Shown: positions 426 through 27,400 of the stretch, in pieces
Numbering within the stretch: the first letter of the stretch is position 1
How the letters are laid out: each line of letters starts with the position of its first letter
Source of the DNA: Bugula neritina
Lineage: Eukaryota > Animalia > Bryozoa
NCBI GenBank assembly: GCA_964035545.1
Contig: OZ037773.1
Span: 1,393,751 to 1,457,750, forward strand
DNA: 64,000 nt
Direction: 5' to 3'
Notes under the pieces: model-generated
Seen by the model: the letters and a program-made list of their open reading frames with translations, nothing else
Told to the model about the DNA's origin: nothing
Databases searched by the model: none
Made by a program: the position numbers and the translations under genes

Positions 426-3400
426 TACACGGAGGGTGGACAGAATGGGAAAGTTGGAGCAGCTGTTCTGCTACTTGTGGTACAGGAAGTCATACTAGAA
501 GTAGGTCATGTAGTAGCCCCGCCCCTTCTCATGGAGGAGATCTCTGCAAAGGAGAATCTATAGAAAGTTCACAATGCATATCTACAGTTTCCTGTCCCGG
601 TAATTTATATATTTTGTACTTCATGTAGTTGTTTTTCCCCTAATCGATGTTTTGAACATAATTTACACATTTATAAGTTATAATAAAGGAATTGAACTTA
701 ATACGTTATATAAGAATTTAGCTAAAGGATATAATAACAGTCTACATCAAAGCTAGCTAAAGTTTAGGGGAAAACAATTTATCCTGTCAGCTTTCTGAGA
801 TTTGGCTTTGATTGTCTAACAGCAGTTCAAAGGTTCACCCAGAGTTGTATTCCCATATCTTCTGTCTGTAGTGCATGGCGGGTGGTCAGATTGGCACAGC
901 TGGTCGAGATGCTCAGCCGAGTGTGGCAGCGGCTTTCGCTTTCGGCAGCGAAGTTGCAACAACCCCACCCCTTCTTTTGGAGGTGCAACGTGCAGTGGGA
1001 GAAGAACTCAGAGAGGACGGTGTTCTGCAGATATTCCCTGTGCAGGTAAGAACTTCCTGTTGCAGGTTCTACTCATTCGTGTAGCAAACTGTGTTATGCG
1101 TGTCATTCACTGTTTACGTGTATACCTTTTGCATTTGTTGTGTCTGCTCTTTATATATGGCGTAAATTCTTTATATATAGTGTAAACTCTTTGTATATGA
1201 TGTATATATGCTCTTTATATATAATGTAAATGATTTATATATAGAGTATATAAGAGTATACCTACTCTTTGTGTATAGTCTATATAATCTTAGTATATAA
1301 TATATATACTCTTTGTGTATAGTATATATACTCTTTGTGTATAGTATATATACTCTTTCTATATAGTATATATACTCTTTGTGTATAGTATATATACTCT
1401 TTGTGTATAGTATATATACTCTTTGTATATAATATATATACTCTTTGTGTATAGTACATATACTCTTAGTATATAATATATATACTCTTTGTTTATAGTT
1501 GATGGAGGATGGTCTGCCTGGGCTACTTGGAGCACATGCTCTGTACCTTGCGGGGGTGGCACTAGAGCCCGCAGCAGGTCTTGCACAAATCCATCACCAC
1601 TCTTTGGTGGGAGAGGCTGCAAAGGAGTGGCTGAAGAGATAGTTGACTGTAACTCACATAGATGCATTGGTAAGTAGCTTGTGGCATGTTGTCAATGTAT
1701 TCCACTCAGATGTTAGGCATGTCTCTAAACTGCTTACAAGTTCCAATGGATGAGAAGTATTCTTGATAAAATATTACAGAGAAATTTTGGACGCCTTCAG
1801 CACTTTTAGCCCCTCCTCTCTGATCTGACAGCATTTGTTTTTTTTATTTTAAAGTCACGCCACATTGGCGCCTTCATTCTTCCACTATGTCTATTATAAG
1901 TTGATGTTTACTTACAAAGAGGAATAATATTATCCTGTTTTGTTGTCTTTAGTACACGGTGGTTGGGCTGCATGGGGTTCCTGGACTAGTTGTTCAGCCA
2001 CTTGTGGAGGAGGCAGTCAACGTAGATACAGAACCTGCACCAACCCTTCTCCTTCTTACGACGGGAACAGCTGTATAGGGCCTGCAGCAGAAAGCAGTGC
2101 CTGTAACTACCACATCAACTGTGTTGGTAAGCTACTTCCTGCAATAGTGTATTACTACACCAAAATGTGTATTACTCGTACTAGACCGGAATGTGTATTA
2201 CTACACTTATAACAGCTATGAGTAAGGTAATAATATATAATCACAGCAGAGTGTATGTTATCTCTACAATACTTTATTATGCCATTGCTAAATCATATAA
2301 GCATGTTGTGGAATAATATGCTTCAACTGTCTATACATACACTACTGACTATTCTACTCAAGTCACTCCAGGAGTCACAATGGTGTACACACACAAGACG
2401 TATTATGTCTTCCTAGCACCTCTAACATCTACATGTAGTACGAAATGCAGCGGTGTTGAGTATAGTGCTAGAATTGCTGCCATGAGGTCAGAAGGTCAAC
2501 TTCAGTCACAGCTTTCTCTCTGATTGTACTTGTTTATACTTCAAGTGGACGGTCGCTGGAGCCAGTGGACGGAGTGGTCAGCCTGTTCTCTTTCTTGTGG
2601 CAGAGGGATACGCAGCAGACAGAGGGCGTGCTCTGACCCTCCTCTCGTAAATGGAGGGAAGGTCTGCGGAGGACAGGCTATAGAAAGACAGGCTTGCAAT
2701 GAGTACACATGTCAAGGTGAAATGTATATCAGATTAATGCTTTCACGACATGCTATATAACACATTTCGTTATATAAACCACTAATACTGAGATACATCA
2801 TGTGTTGTCATGCATCGTATATTGTGCCAGGTATTCTGCTATATTACACCACAATATGAATTTGGACTTTTTGGCTTAATATTTAAAGAAATATTGATTT
2901 TTTTGAATAATACACTTACCGAAATCATTTTCCTTGTCTCGTGTTTTTACCTGACTTCTGTATAAAACTCGTCGTACAGCTTTACAGTTTCAAGGGTGGC
3001 TGAGTGCAGATAAACTGTAGAGCCACTGCACGACATTAACTCACTATGATTAGCTACTAACTCACTCTGTAGTCTACACTTAAACAGATACATTTCCTTC
3101 CTTTCTAGTGAATGGCGAGTGGACAGAATGGACAGAGTGGACAAGCTGCTCACTGACTTGTGGGTCAGGAACCCAGACTAAGTCTAGGAGTTGCAGCAGT
3201 CCTCAGCCTATGAATGGAGGCAGAGACTGTATAGGAGCTGCGACTAGGTTAAGACGCTGTAACGAAGACATTGTCTGTCCAGTACATGGCGGGTGGAGTC
3301 AATGGTCCGCCTACTCTCTCTGCTCCACTTTCTGCGGGCAGGGAACTCAGACTAGGAGCAGGAATTGCAACTCACCAACTCCATCAGTGAACGGAGAGTT

Positions 3401-24400: not shown

Positions 24401-27400
24401 ATGAATGGGGAGGAAGACCACACAGGATGTCGTAGAGGCGGAGTCTGAGCATAGCGGCACAGGCCTTCAGGTGAGCACCGTGCTCCTTCACTATGAGTGG
24501 CATCCTGGGAAGGGAATAAAGTGCTGCTAACTCACACAGAGTACTACTAACTCTCAGTACTATTAACTCACAGTACTACTAACTCACAGTACAACCAACT
24601 CACAGTACTACTAACTCACAGTACTACAAACTCACACACAGTACTGCTTACTCAGAGTACTGCTAACTCAGAGTACTACTAACTCACAGTACTATTAGCT
24701 AACTCACAGTACAACTAACTCACACAGAGTACTACTAACTCACGCCACCAATAAATAAGTCACTCACTTTTGCAGAAGGATGAAGGCGTACTCTAAGGGA
24801 ACCAGAATACGTTTAGTAGTCTCAGCATTGAGTAGGTCACCACAGCGAGTCACAAAACTGTGAATAGAGCCCAGAGCTCCGGCTCTACCGTCTAGCGCCA
24901 CCTGCCAGGTGAACGCATCTCCCTTTGAGTTCTCCGCCTCCAACTCCTTCAATCAAGAGATCAATGGCTAGATTATTGTAAACATAAGCATTTCTACCAG
25001 CCGTAACAAATGTCACCTTCAAGCTATGTACTGGGGAGAGTAAATATCAACAGTTACCATGGAGACAGTATCCTAGCAACATAGATGAAAGTTTGAACTC
25101 TTTGCTTGCAGTCAACTTCTGTTACAACCAACTGTATGGCACATATCAGTTGAGATAAGGTCAAACTGCTAGAGGAATGTCTAAACCATGCATGCCTCAC
25201 CTTGACTGTCCTAGGGAAGGTGTTCTTCCAGAGCTGGAGGAGGGTGGGGAGGCAGGGTTTGACTACAGACGGTCCCAGCGTCATCACGGCCCCAATTATC
25301 AGCCAACCAGACTGAATTCTAGGCAGGGAGAGTCTGGAGCTCTGAGAGGCAGAGCGGAGCAACTCCTCCGCCTGGTTGAACACTTTCTGCAGTAGTAAGT
25401 ATAGAGTAAGTATAGAGTAAGTATAGAGTAAGTATAGAATAAGTATAGAGTAAGTATAGAGTAAGTATAGAGTAAGTATAGAATAAGTATAGAGTAAGTA
25501 TAGAGTAAGTATAGAATAAGTATAGAGTAAGTATAGAGTAAGTATAGAGTAAGTATAGAATAAGTATAGAGTAAGTATAGAGTAAGTATAGAGTAAGTAT
25601 AGAATAAGTATAGAGTAAGTATAGAGTAAGTATAGAGTAAGTATAGAGTAAGTATAGAGTAAGTATAGAGTAAGTATAGAGTAAGTGTAGAGTAAGTATA
25701 GAGTAGGTATAGAGCAGATTATAGATAGAGTAGATTATATAGACTGAGAGTAAAGGCCCACCTTTCCTATAGAGTATGGAATACCGAGGGGACATTTGCT
25801 GACTGCCCCCAACAGGGCGGAAATTGCAAAGCTGAATCCTGAAAGAGCATCTCCATTGGATTTCATCTGCAAAACAAAGTAATGCAGCATTTCAAGGATT
25901 TTTCAAGAAAAATGATCCAATATCATTAGCATGTCTCACCTAACCTAGCTGTTCCATACCTCACCTAGCCCAGGTATTCCATATTTCAACTAGCCCAGCT
26001 GGTTATGCCTCACCTAGCCCAGCTGATCTATGTCTCACCTAGCCCAGCTGATCTATGTCTCACCTAGCCCAGCTGATCTATGTCTCACCTAGCCCAGCTG
26101 CTCCATATCCCACCTAGCCCAATTAGTTATATCTCACCTAGCCCAGCTGATCTATGTCTCACCTAGCCCAGCTAGTTATATCTCACCTTGTCTAGCTGCT
26201 CCATGTTTCGCTCTAGCAGAGGGGTGAGAAGAGCCGGCACAGCTACGGCTATAGACCGAAGGCACCAGGCAGCCGCCAGTCGAGCTGCAGAGGACGGGTG
26301 GGTGAGCACGGACATCACAGGCTTCACGATATCTGAGTGTAGAAAACACAGACCAATATAATCTTCTTCAAAGTTGACTTACGGACTGCTGATTCAGACC
26401 ACAGTGATAGACTAAGTACCTGAGTTGGATTCAGTGGTGAGCTGGGTGGCCGTAGTACCCAGACTCTGTACTATGCCACCCAGTTCCTGAAGACTACAGA
26501 CCAGCACATGTTGAGTGGCAGTTATCACTGACTGCTGGGGGGAATCCGTATGCGACTCTGCACCTAGAGAAGATAAATCCTAATGCAATGAAATCATTTT
26601 AAAGATGGGAAAAATACCTTTGAAAAAATTAGGCACCAAATTGATTTAACTTTTAATGAGGAAGAAAGGATAACTATGGAAAAGGTAGACTAACACTTGA
26701 AAAAGTATCTAGAATATCATGTAGGAAACATCAAAATAAAAGCTTTCAATAACTTTTTTATAGTCCGGTGTATTATATATAAAATAAATATAACACTCTT
26801 TTTATAGCAATACTTTCTTCATGAGAAAGTAACTCCAATTCTTTTTTTTGGAATTTATAAATAGCTGTTTGTTATTCCCAAACTATCTGAAGGGTGGATG
26901 TAGAACAGCAAGCTGACGCACGTACTCATCACACCCATCTGCTTTCCGATGACTTTGCTCAGCTCCTTGGCAGCATTCACCTGCGCCTTCTCCCCCAGCA
27001 TGCCTTGCACCGAGGTGGCCATGATGAATATGATACACTTCCTGGCGTAGACAGCGTCAATATGGGTCTGCGTAGTGCGGGGGTTGGCAGCGAGTGTGAC
27101 AATGTGCTCCAGAACCAGTGTCATGTTCCTCTCCAGCCACTGGGCACCCATCAGTTTGATGAACTCGTTGTAGGCCTGAGATATCAGAATCACTATGATA
27201 ATATACTCTGATATGAGTCACTATGATAATATACTCTGATATGAGTCACTATGATAATATACTCTGATATGAGTCACTATGATAATATACTCTGATATGA
27301 GTCACTATTATGATATACTAAAAGTCACTCATAAGAAAAATCACTCACATGAGTGACTCCGACTCTGATCTCTCTGTTGATAGCAGACGCCCCTCTCACC

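Follow-up and report, generated by a model that had tools for sequence, protein, structure and literature searches.

Short tandem repeats that copy a splice junction, often together with exon bases, and stack the copies in the intron are the subject of this report. They occur in two genes of a 64-kb stretch of DNA (the window) on chromosome 9 (contig 9) of the Bugula neritina assembly, at a distance of 1.4 Mb from one end of that record: a HEATR5A/B homologue and a thrombospondin type 1 repeat gene of which part is seen. These arrays are of a known kind, with an unusual density here and a second animal phylum as host. The original prediction, made from the letters of this stretch, placed them in no named system, but the literature does have a name for such arrays, since the sections consulted of two papers on amphioxus call them “mirages” (PMC3087553, PMC3902484). 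The reading that we favor, and hold to be probably right, is that these are mirage-type minisatellites which arose by neutral seeding in short introns and persist through the tolerance of splicing, with no junction-seeking process needed.

Tandem Repeats Finder returned 101 rows in the window, which merge into 60 arrays making up 19% of the sequence. Twenty-eight of these lie in 24 of the 42 introns of the two genes, 22 of the 35 HEATR5 introns have a tandem array, and none was found within any of the 36 HEATR5 exons. A junction is reached or overlapped by 8 of the 28 intronic arrays, and 10 come within 3 nt of one; in six or seven of the junction arrays the decoy sites are as strong as the true site. 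All eleven arrays named in the original prediction are present within a few bases of where it had put them. Its attribution of the pattern to two genes was right in that both carry junction arrays, but these are nearly confined to HEATR5, with seven or more against one in the thrombospondin gene.

The content of each unit was judged by stacking the copies in register. As had been claimed, the unit contains the junction in HEATR5 introns 9, 16, 23, 29, 33, and 35 and in the thrombospondin-gene intron. On the donor side, the 48-bp unit of intron 29 includes the donor and the 9 exon bases before it (the donor lies at 15312, and the array therefore overlaps 9 exon bases, which corrects the earlier account), the 23-bp unit of intron 23 holds about 12 exon bases and the donor, and the 25-bp unit of intron 9 holds about 14-20 exon bases, with the array overlapping about 20. 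The first base of the 33-bp unit of intron 30 is intron position +1. On the acceptor side, the 44-bp unit of intron 33 joins 14-20 bases of intron and about 24 of exon at the acceptor, and the length of that intron, 339 nt, equals 31 + 7 x 44; the 43-bp unit of intron 16 has the acceptor and about 8-10 exon bases. The 25-bp unit of intron 35 reads as an acceptor-like TTACAG, one base, and then a donor-like GTAAGT. The claim did not hold for intron 31, where the copies have no GT in register; stacking gave the same result for introns 18 and 10, whose arrays adjoin the junction in copies that lack GT or AG in register, and these three are thus not decoy arrays. The 11-bp array of intron 10 (25394-25714 in the Tandem Repeats Finder output) has no decoy AG, and in the 28-bp array of intron 6 the acceptor is supplied by the last partial unit and the decoys are weak. 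Site strengths, scored with a splice matrix derived from all 42 introns in the two genes, are given in Table 1. Use of a decoy would shift the frame or add a stop; in the case of intron 29, read-through meets a TAG at the seventh codon. There is also an alternative in-frame AG 12 nt downstream of the intron 35 acceptor.

For site choice, contigs from public sequencing runs were aligned to window positions 11440-14278, with the 25-bp and 48-bp arrays covered via loose contig ends only. Each of two RNA-like runs, from different studies, has a spliced contig of 1.6-1.8 kb. The joint 12052|11712, seen in both studies, connects the end of exon 33 to the start of exon 34, and because exon 34 starts at 11712, it is the last of the eight intron 33 acceptor copies that is used. 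The joint 13372|12589 puts the end of exon 31 at 13372, before a GTGAGT donor, and the joint 13937|13617 puts the end of exon 30 at 13937, with use of the first of three GTAACT donors (the aligner placed this joint 2 nt off, a shift attributed to a variant base). Past 14145, the RNA contig carries the unique end of exon 29; hence, the first of 22 intron 29 donors is the one joined to 14143. At these four array-flanked junctions the site used is always the first donor or the last acceptor, which bears out the earlier claim for the exon-proximal copy. The remaining junctions are placed by homology and by the conservation of their positions in a relative. The homology-only model, in which hemichordate HEATR5B was aligned by a spliced dynamic-programming script, had wrong donors at introns 29 and 31 and a wrong acceptor at intron 29, all corrected by RNA; the corrected model has 36 exons, 35 introns, and a CDS of 5922 nt (1974 aa) with no stop.

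Two other public runs are DNA-like, with contigs that pass through introns and enter the arrays from unique sequence. Collapsed contigs of the 44-bp unit stand at 5-7 times single-copy depth in independent samples of 2016 and 2023. DNA contigs omit 13166-13300 and 13633-13837, with one-unit back-joints, a kind of difference that has to be read knowing that short-read contigs can collapse repeats. From the repeat depth, the contigs running into arrays, and these length differences, it follows that the arrays are real and that array length is probably polymorphic between individuals.

Table 1. Genes and arrays of the window, with splice-site scores and intron lengths where determined (intron length is given as B. 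neritina; relative on the 17.7-kb contig; B. neritina with arrays collapsed)
Feature	Window position	Strand	Site score (true; decoys)	Intron length, nt	Basis or remark
Thrombospondin type 1 repeat gene (part seen)	424..4107	+			Pfam PF00090; direct reading; open spliced frame
HEATR5A/B homologue	9490..34446	-			Pfam PF25468; tblastn and spliced alignment of hemichordate HEATR5B; RNA contigs
22 bp x 11 acceptor array, thrombospondin-gene intron 1046..1498	1255..1499	+	12.1; six or seven at 8.0-8.6		Tandem Repeats Finder, register stacking
25 bp x 46 array filling intron 35 (10958..9810)	9801..10936	-		1149; 87; 47	Tandem Repeats Finder
44 bp x 7.9 acceptor array filling intron 33 (12051..11713)	11690..12038	-	8.9; 5 at 7.9-8.9, AG lost in two further copies		Tandem Repeats Finder, stacking, RNA
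42 bp x 5 array from +3 of intron 31 (donor G 13371)	13158..13369	-		782; 70; 612	Tandem Repeats Finder, stacking, RNA
33 bp x 2.9 donor array, intron 30 (13936..13618)	13841..13936	-			Tandem Repeats Finder, stacking, RNA
48 bp x 21.7 donor array, intron 29 (15312..14144)	14279..15321	-	5.5; 21 at 5.3-5.6	1169; 284; 174	Tandem Repeats Finder, stacking, RNA
23 bp x 14.3 donor array, intron 23 (17781..17410)	17456..17785	-	10.1; 12 at 8.1-11.3	372; 67; 69	Tandem Repeats Finder, stacking
23 bp x 2.1 duplication from +3/+4 of intron 18 (donor G 20398)	20347..20395	-			absent from the list of the original prediction
43 bp x 12.5 acceptor array, intron 16 (21725..20736)	20732..21269	-	4.7; 12 at 3.8-5.3	990; 72; 499	Tandem Repeats Finder, stacking
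11 bp x 29 pyrimidine-rich array ending in the tract before the intron 10 acceptor (25761..25387)	25394..25739	-
25 bp x 11 donor array, intron 9 (26186..25867)	25927..26206	-	10.8; 8 at 6.9-10.0		junction from homology only
28 bp x 4.6 array filling intron 6 (27348..27176)	27190..27319	-			Tandem Repeats Finder

The history of the arrays is best seen in orthologous introns. A HEATR5 orthologue with 56-92% amino-acid identity per exon is present on a 17.7-kb metagenome contig from a related animal, and the positions and phases of introns 12-35 are as in B. neritina, with two exceptions that we read as alignment wobble (a displacement of 8 residues at intron 20 and of one phase step at intron 29). 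Its introns are short, many of them 67-96 nt, and this orthologue has no junction arrays, its seven small arrays all lying at least 12 nt from junctions. With the arrays collapsed, array-bearing introns of B. neritina are mostly 40-250 nt (introns 16 and 31 are longer, at 499 and 612), and collapsed introns 23, 29, and 35 are of the same order of length as those of the relative. By our tally, arrays account for about 6.2 of the 11.3 kb of B. neritina introns 12-35. Elsewhere, a closer relative (84-88% identity) has no donor array in intron 31, another carries in intron 30 an 18-bp array of its own that ends in the acceptor, and in yet another a 22-bp array follows the donor of intron 30 at a distance of 26 nt. 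Since the orthologous introns are at the same positions, short, and without junction arrays, the arrays are young; they are lineage-specific, are turning over, and account for most of the intron growth. Of the two consequences that had been foreseen, intron expansion therefore stands, the introns of the relative being shorter, but sliding does not: the junction positions are unmoved.

Two further observations concern these relatives. The 17.7-kb contig has (at 10309-10601) one more intron, 71 nt long and of phase 1, at B. neritina residue 1635, within exon 32 (window 12368-12589), which represents either a loss in B. neritina or a gain in the relative. Moreover, short-read contigs of relatives end within tandem arrays (L001:1903-1946; L031:1-239), a sign that introns rich in arrays may be widespread in the larger group and interrupt short-read assemblies.

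How surprising it is to find eight junction arrays depends on what a random seed is allowed to do. We placed one unit at random in each array-collapsed intron, using the 42 introns and 28 arrays of both genes, under two nulls. Under null A, where the seed must be wholly intronic, 0.63 junction arrays are expected against the 8 seen (P = 3e-8), whereas under null B, where the seed may span a junction, 7.3 are expected (P = 0.45). The random-placement check proposed for the pattern thus gives an excess over the first null and none over the second for these two genes. Null B is the fairer of the two, since a duplication across a junction does no harm as long as splicing takes the outer site, and the fit of this null means that short ancestral introns and frequent duplication suffice for HEATR5. 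Exons free of arrays are what selection would produce.

The chain of events would then be as follows. Slippage or unequal exchange would produce tandem duplicates of segments of 11-48 bp, which would go on to expand, with seeds falling regardless of exon-intron boundaries and wholly exonic arrays being removed by selection. The ancestral introns would have been roughly 50-250 nt long, so that many seeds would span a junction, and junction-spanning arrays would survive because their outermost sites (first donor, last acceptor) restore the original mRNA. For donors, we suggest a first-come choice in the 5′-to-3′ direction, as in human F7; for acceptors, exon definition may operate, with errors cleared by nonsense-mediated decay. 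One of the two routes put forward in the original prediction, short introns with a high duplication rate and a tolerant spliceosome, is thereby upheld by the collapsed lengths, the 67-87 nt introns of the relative, null B, and the RNA.

Sequence beyond the window has a bearing on this. Arrays cover 3.5-4.8% of two 100-kb blocks (C1:3000001-3100000, C2:5000001-5100000), at 0.32-0.41 per kb against 0.94 in the window, and a screen of the 65 arrays in these gene-poor blocks by coding flanks and splice matrix, which has low power, gave no convincing junction array and one small duplication in the pyrimidine tract near an acceptor. Several points weigh against neutral seeding with tolerance. Null A is rejected, and the neutral verdict assumes that spanning seeds arise as readily as intronic ones and do no more harm. 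The exon overlaps are mostly small (0-9 nt in 6 of 8) and not uniform. The window was chosen for the pattern, and 200 kb of independent, gene-poor sequence holds no convincing junction array. The RNA consists of assembled contigs, in which minor isoforms are hidden, and covers 4 of about 11 array-flanked junctions. Finally, arrays of GTAAGT preceded by AG are about 7 times commoner genome-wide, relative to background dinucleotide frequency, than those preceded by AT or TT (on chromosome 1 the AG type has 21 loci against 11, although its background is 3.7 times lower), which could reflect junction bias.

That last point leads to the strongest competitor, also raised in the original prediction: a process, whether breaks coupled to transcription or splicing or slippage at AGGT microhomology, that makes tandem duplications preferentially at exon-intron boundaries. 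We consider it unlikely as the explanation of these arrays, but it has real evidence in its favor. Besides the excess over null A, four of the junction arrays sit in introns of collapsed length 250-610 nt, where the chance under that null is 1-4% each. Across the assembly (216,009,554 bases, 321 contigs), we counted patterns of three copies at 18-48 nt spacing, the counts being read as ratios to controls only. Triples of AGGTAAGT gave 1695 matches against 9 for the reversed control, AGGTGAGT gave 1629 against 87, WTGTAAGT 1218 against 182, and the acceptor-like TTTDYAGG 251 against 19. On chromosome 1, the matches of the first two motifs fall into 21 and 18 distinct loci, which extrapolates to roughly 130 loci for each in the whole genome. 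Triple tandem consensus donors are thus 19 to 190 times commoner than reversed-motif controls, the counts being of motif matches genome-wide. (A permuted control, AGTAAGGT, was dropped as a poor one, being donor-like itself, AAG|GT.) The units are unrelated between loci, and many read as a pyrimidine tract-AG|GTRAGT. The GTAAGT arrays without AG are, however, also 7 times commoner than their control, so that the signal is in part a general sequence style. Within the window, null B fits, 18 of the 28 intronic arrays lie away from junctions, and array density is about equal (0.9 per kb) in the exon-poor half. On a larger scale, the distribution tracks chromosome ends and not genes: of 38 consensus-donor array loci on chromosome 1, 28 are found no more than 5 Mb from an end (P = 7e-9). 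The chromosomes may thus have a zone rich in minisatellites towards their ends, and the clustering fits the place of the window 1.4 Mb from the end of chromosome 9. For HEATR5, then, a boundary-aimed process is not needed, given null B; the excess of consensus donors means that a junction bias may exist genome-wide beside neutral seeding and tolerance.

A broader proposal built on the same counts is that B. neritina has a genome-wide class of minisatellites born at junctions or mimicking them, with hundreds of AG|GTRAGT arrays near chromosome ends. We give this a modest chance at best. If true, it would point to junction-biased duplication (slippage at AGGT microhomology) or to selection for splicing-neutral units, and tandem duplication would be a main driver of intron growth in the B. 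neritina lineage.

Two other explanations have less to commend them, and we rate each as quite improbable. The first is that selection keeps the arrays, as sponges or enhancers for U1 or U2AF, or as tandem recursive splice sites by which long introns could be spliced safely. In Drosophila, the recursive splice sites (ratchet points) of long introns have an acceptor and a donor juxtaposed around a zero-length exon and used stepwise, and it is true that many genome-wide units here juxtapose an acceptor-like AG with GTRAGT and that the decoys have full strength. But recursive use in the window would leave extra bases, because the acceptor-donor pairs are 1-20 nt apart, and the arrays are missing from the corresponding introns in relatives, probably differ in copy number between individuals (as judged from short-read contigs), and have units that are unrelated from intron to intron. 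The high identity among units fits youth and homogenization equally well.

The second is that some arrays are members of a family of dispersed repeats, having inserted or grown in an intron before donating a splice site. The case for it is the 25-bp array of intron 35, for which searches of the B. neritina genome gave 440 first-look candidates and at least 40 other loci at 72-84% identity; on this count, the earlier statement that the units are unrelated holds for most arrays but not for that one. The in-frame AG 12 nt downstream of the intron 35 acceptor may be added, since the first bases of exon 36 may be a decayed unit, and weaker relatives of the 43-bp and 23-bp arrays exist at other places in the genome. 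Against it, the junction of intron 35 is at a position conserved in an array-free relative, the 44-bp array of intron 33 and the intron 9 array of 25-bp units occur at this locus alone, the 48-bp array of intron 29 has only weak similarities elsewhere (67-75% identity), and the 44-bp, intron 9 25-bp, 48-bp, and 23-bp arrays contain clearly exon-derived bases. Lastly, the chance that the arrays are artefacts of assembly is negligible: tandem repeats are error-prone in assembly and are collapsed in short-read contigs, but Darwin Tree of Life assemblies such as this one rely on long accurate reads, and both the depth of the 44-bp unit in two independent samples and the unspliced DNA contigs that run from unique sequence into arrays speak for real repeats.

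A number of other repeats and sequences were recorded on the way. The 25-bp family of intron 35 type forms kilobase arrays on all chromosomes (e.g., C3:420464-422415 and C5:17175554-17176419). A unit-to-unit similarity screen found just shared TA-rich words and a separate hexamer family, whose arrays (TACTAA / CTAATA type) are at unrelated loci in the window (7263-7318, 35603-35642, and 36065-36130), in the C1 block (42394-42592), and in the C2 block (54745-54793 and 63826-63910). HEATR5 intron 34 has a 214-nt imperfect GT/AC microsatellite (window 11215-11428), and intron 26 a run of 48 AGT triplets (16343-16488) that stops 22 nt from the acceptor. The thrombospondin gene has about one repeat per exon, and downstream of its exons a 355-bp unit is present three times at 93% identity (5017-6094). 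At 47377-47575 there is a 42-bp x 4.7 array, its unit a multiple of three and its flanks weakly coding-like, which may be a coding repeat. As to the assembly itself, for which nine chromosomes are reported by the Darwin Tree of Life (PMC11480708), its 15,248-nt mitochondrial contig (A 37.7, C 17.0, G 12.2, and T 33.1%) agrees in base composition and tRNA order with the published B. neritina mitogenome (PMC2678162): ARAGORN puts trnN at 9978-10042, presumably the slot between the two rRNA genes, and a reverse-strand trnV between trnR and trnQ. An amphioxus origin was rejected from the mitochondrial features and the size of the genome. A nuclear chromosome carries at C6:11174072-11175412 a full COX1 match with a score about that of the mitochondrial contig and the same 9 TGA codons, and this match could stem from a recent insertion of mitochondrial DNA or from inclusion during assembly. 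Further COX1 genes are found on C17, C214, and C73, one without TGA codons and two with TGA as sense (one of them split); the first looks bacterial, and the TGA-sense ones suggest other eukaryotes. The assembly thus retains sequences of co-living organisms.

Three lessons can be drawn from the HEATR5 introns. First, tandem copying of junctions can lengthen introns five- to seventeen-fold without moving them, as introns 23 and 35 illustrate (372 against 67 nt and 1149 against 87 nt). Second, such genes offer a natural test bed for splice-site choice, with as many as 21 donors or 12 acceptors, all equally strong, in a row, of which only the outermost is used. Third, they carry a warning for gene prediction in B. 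neritina, where a homology-only model misplaced three array junctions.

Among known systems, the closest are the mirage minisatellites of amphioxus. In the sections consulted of two papers, which cite Canestro et al. 2002, they are described from Adh3, troponin C, the globins BflGb6/9, and PGBD5, with a unit of 10-160 bp that spans the intron-exon boundary at the 5′ or 3′ end of the intron, is unrelated between genes, and keeps its AG or GT in most copies, normal splicing being unaffected and copy number variable (PMC3087553, PMC3902484). The B. neritina arrays are alike in being head-to-tail runs of short units in a gene, with the unit lying over the boundary and the authentic site spliced, except that those of introns 10, 18, and 31 adjoin the boundary without spanning it. 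They are far denser, with eight junction arrays in the window and up to 21-45 copies, and, unlike the amphioxus cases, they are here compared with explicit placement nulls and with orthologous introns. The hosts of the described mirages are cephalochordates and B. neritina is a bryozoan, which is a difference of range and not of mechanism. Our literature searches found no report of mirage-type arrays in a bryozoan, and the parts consulted of two B. neritina genome papers make no mention of them. Their presence in a lophotrochozoan means that mirages are not a cephalochordate oddity.

The best-studied single case is the 37-bp VNTR (variable number tandem repeat) in intron 7 of human F7, whose first element lies over the exon-intron boundary and whose identical downstream donors are silent, the most upstream donor being chosen by a mechanism shown with 50 constructs (PMC1557585). 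Intron 29 of HEATR5 behaves in the same way, its 21 equal-strength downstream donors being silent and the most upstream one used, according to RNA. F7 differs in being a single mammalian locus with few copies and without acceptor arrays, and the mechanism of choice, demonstrated there, is for B. neritina a suggested parallel. In the model of Rogers, as given in the section consulted of PMC3087553, introns are gained or grow by tandem duplication across AGGT proto-splice sites. The likeness is that duplicated splice signals make exon bases intronic while the outer pair of sites restores the mRNA, and the difference is that B. neritina shows no new intron positions (12-35 are common to the relative), so that what is seen is lengthening and not gain.

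The Drosophila recursive sites are matched by the many genome-wide B. neritina units that juxtapose a pyrimidine tract-AG with GTRAGT, but in the units of the window AG and GT are separated, and the arrays are not conserved. Introner-like mobile elements, which are dispersed and near-identical copies of whole introns, do not describe the locus-specific 44-bp and intron 9 25-bp arrays, and even the intron 35 family, which is dispersed, is so in the form of arrays at 72-84% identity.

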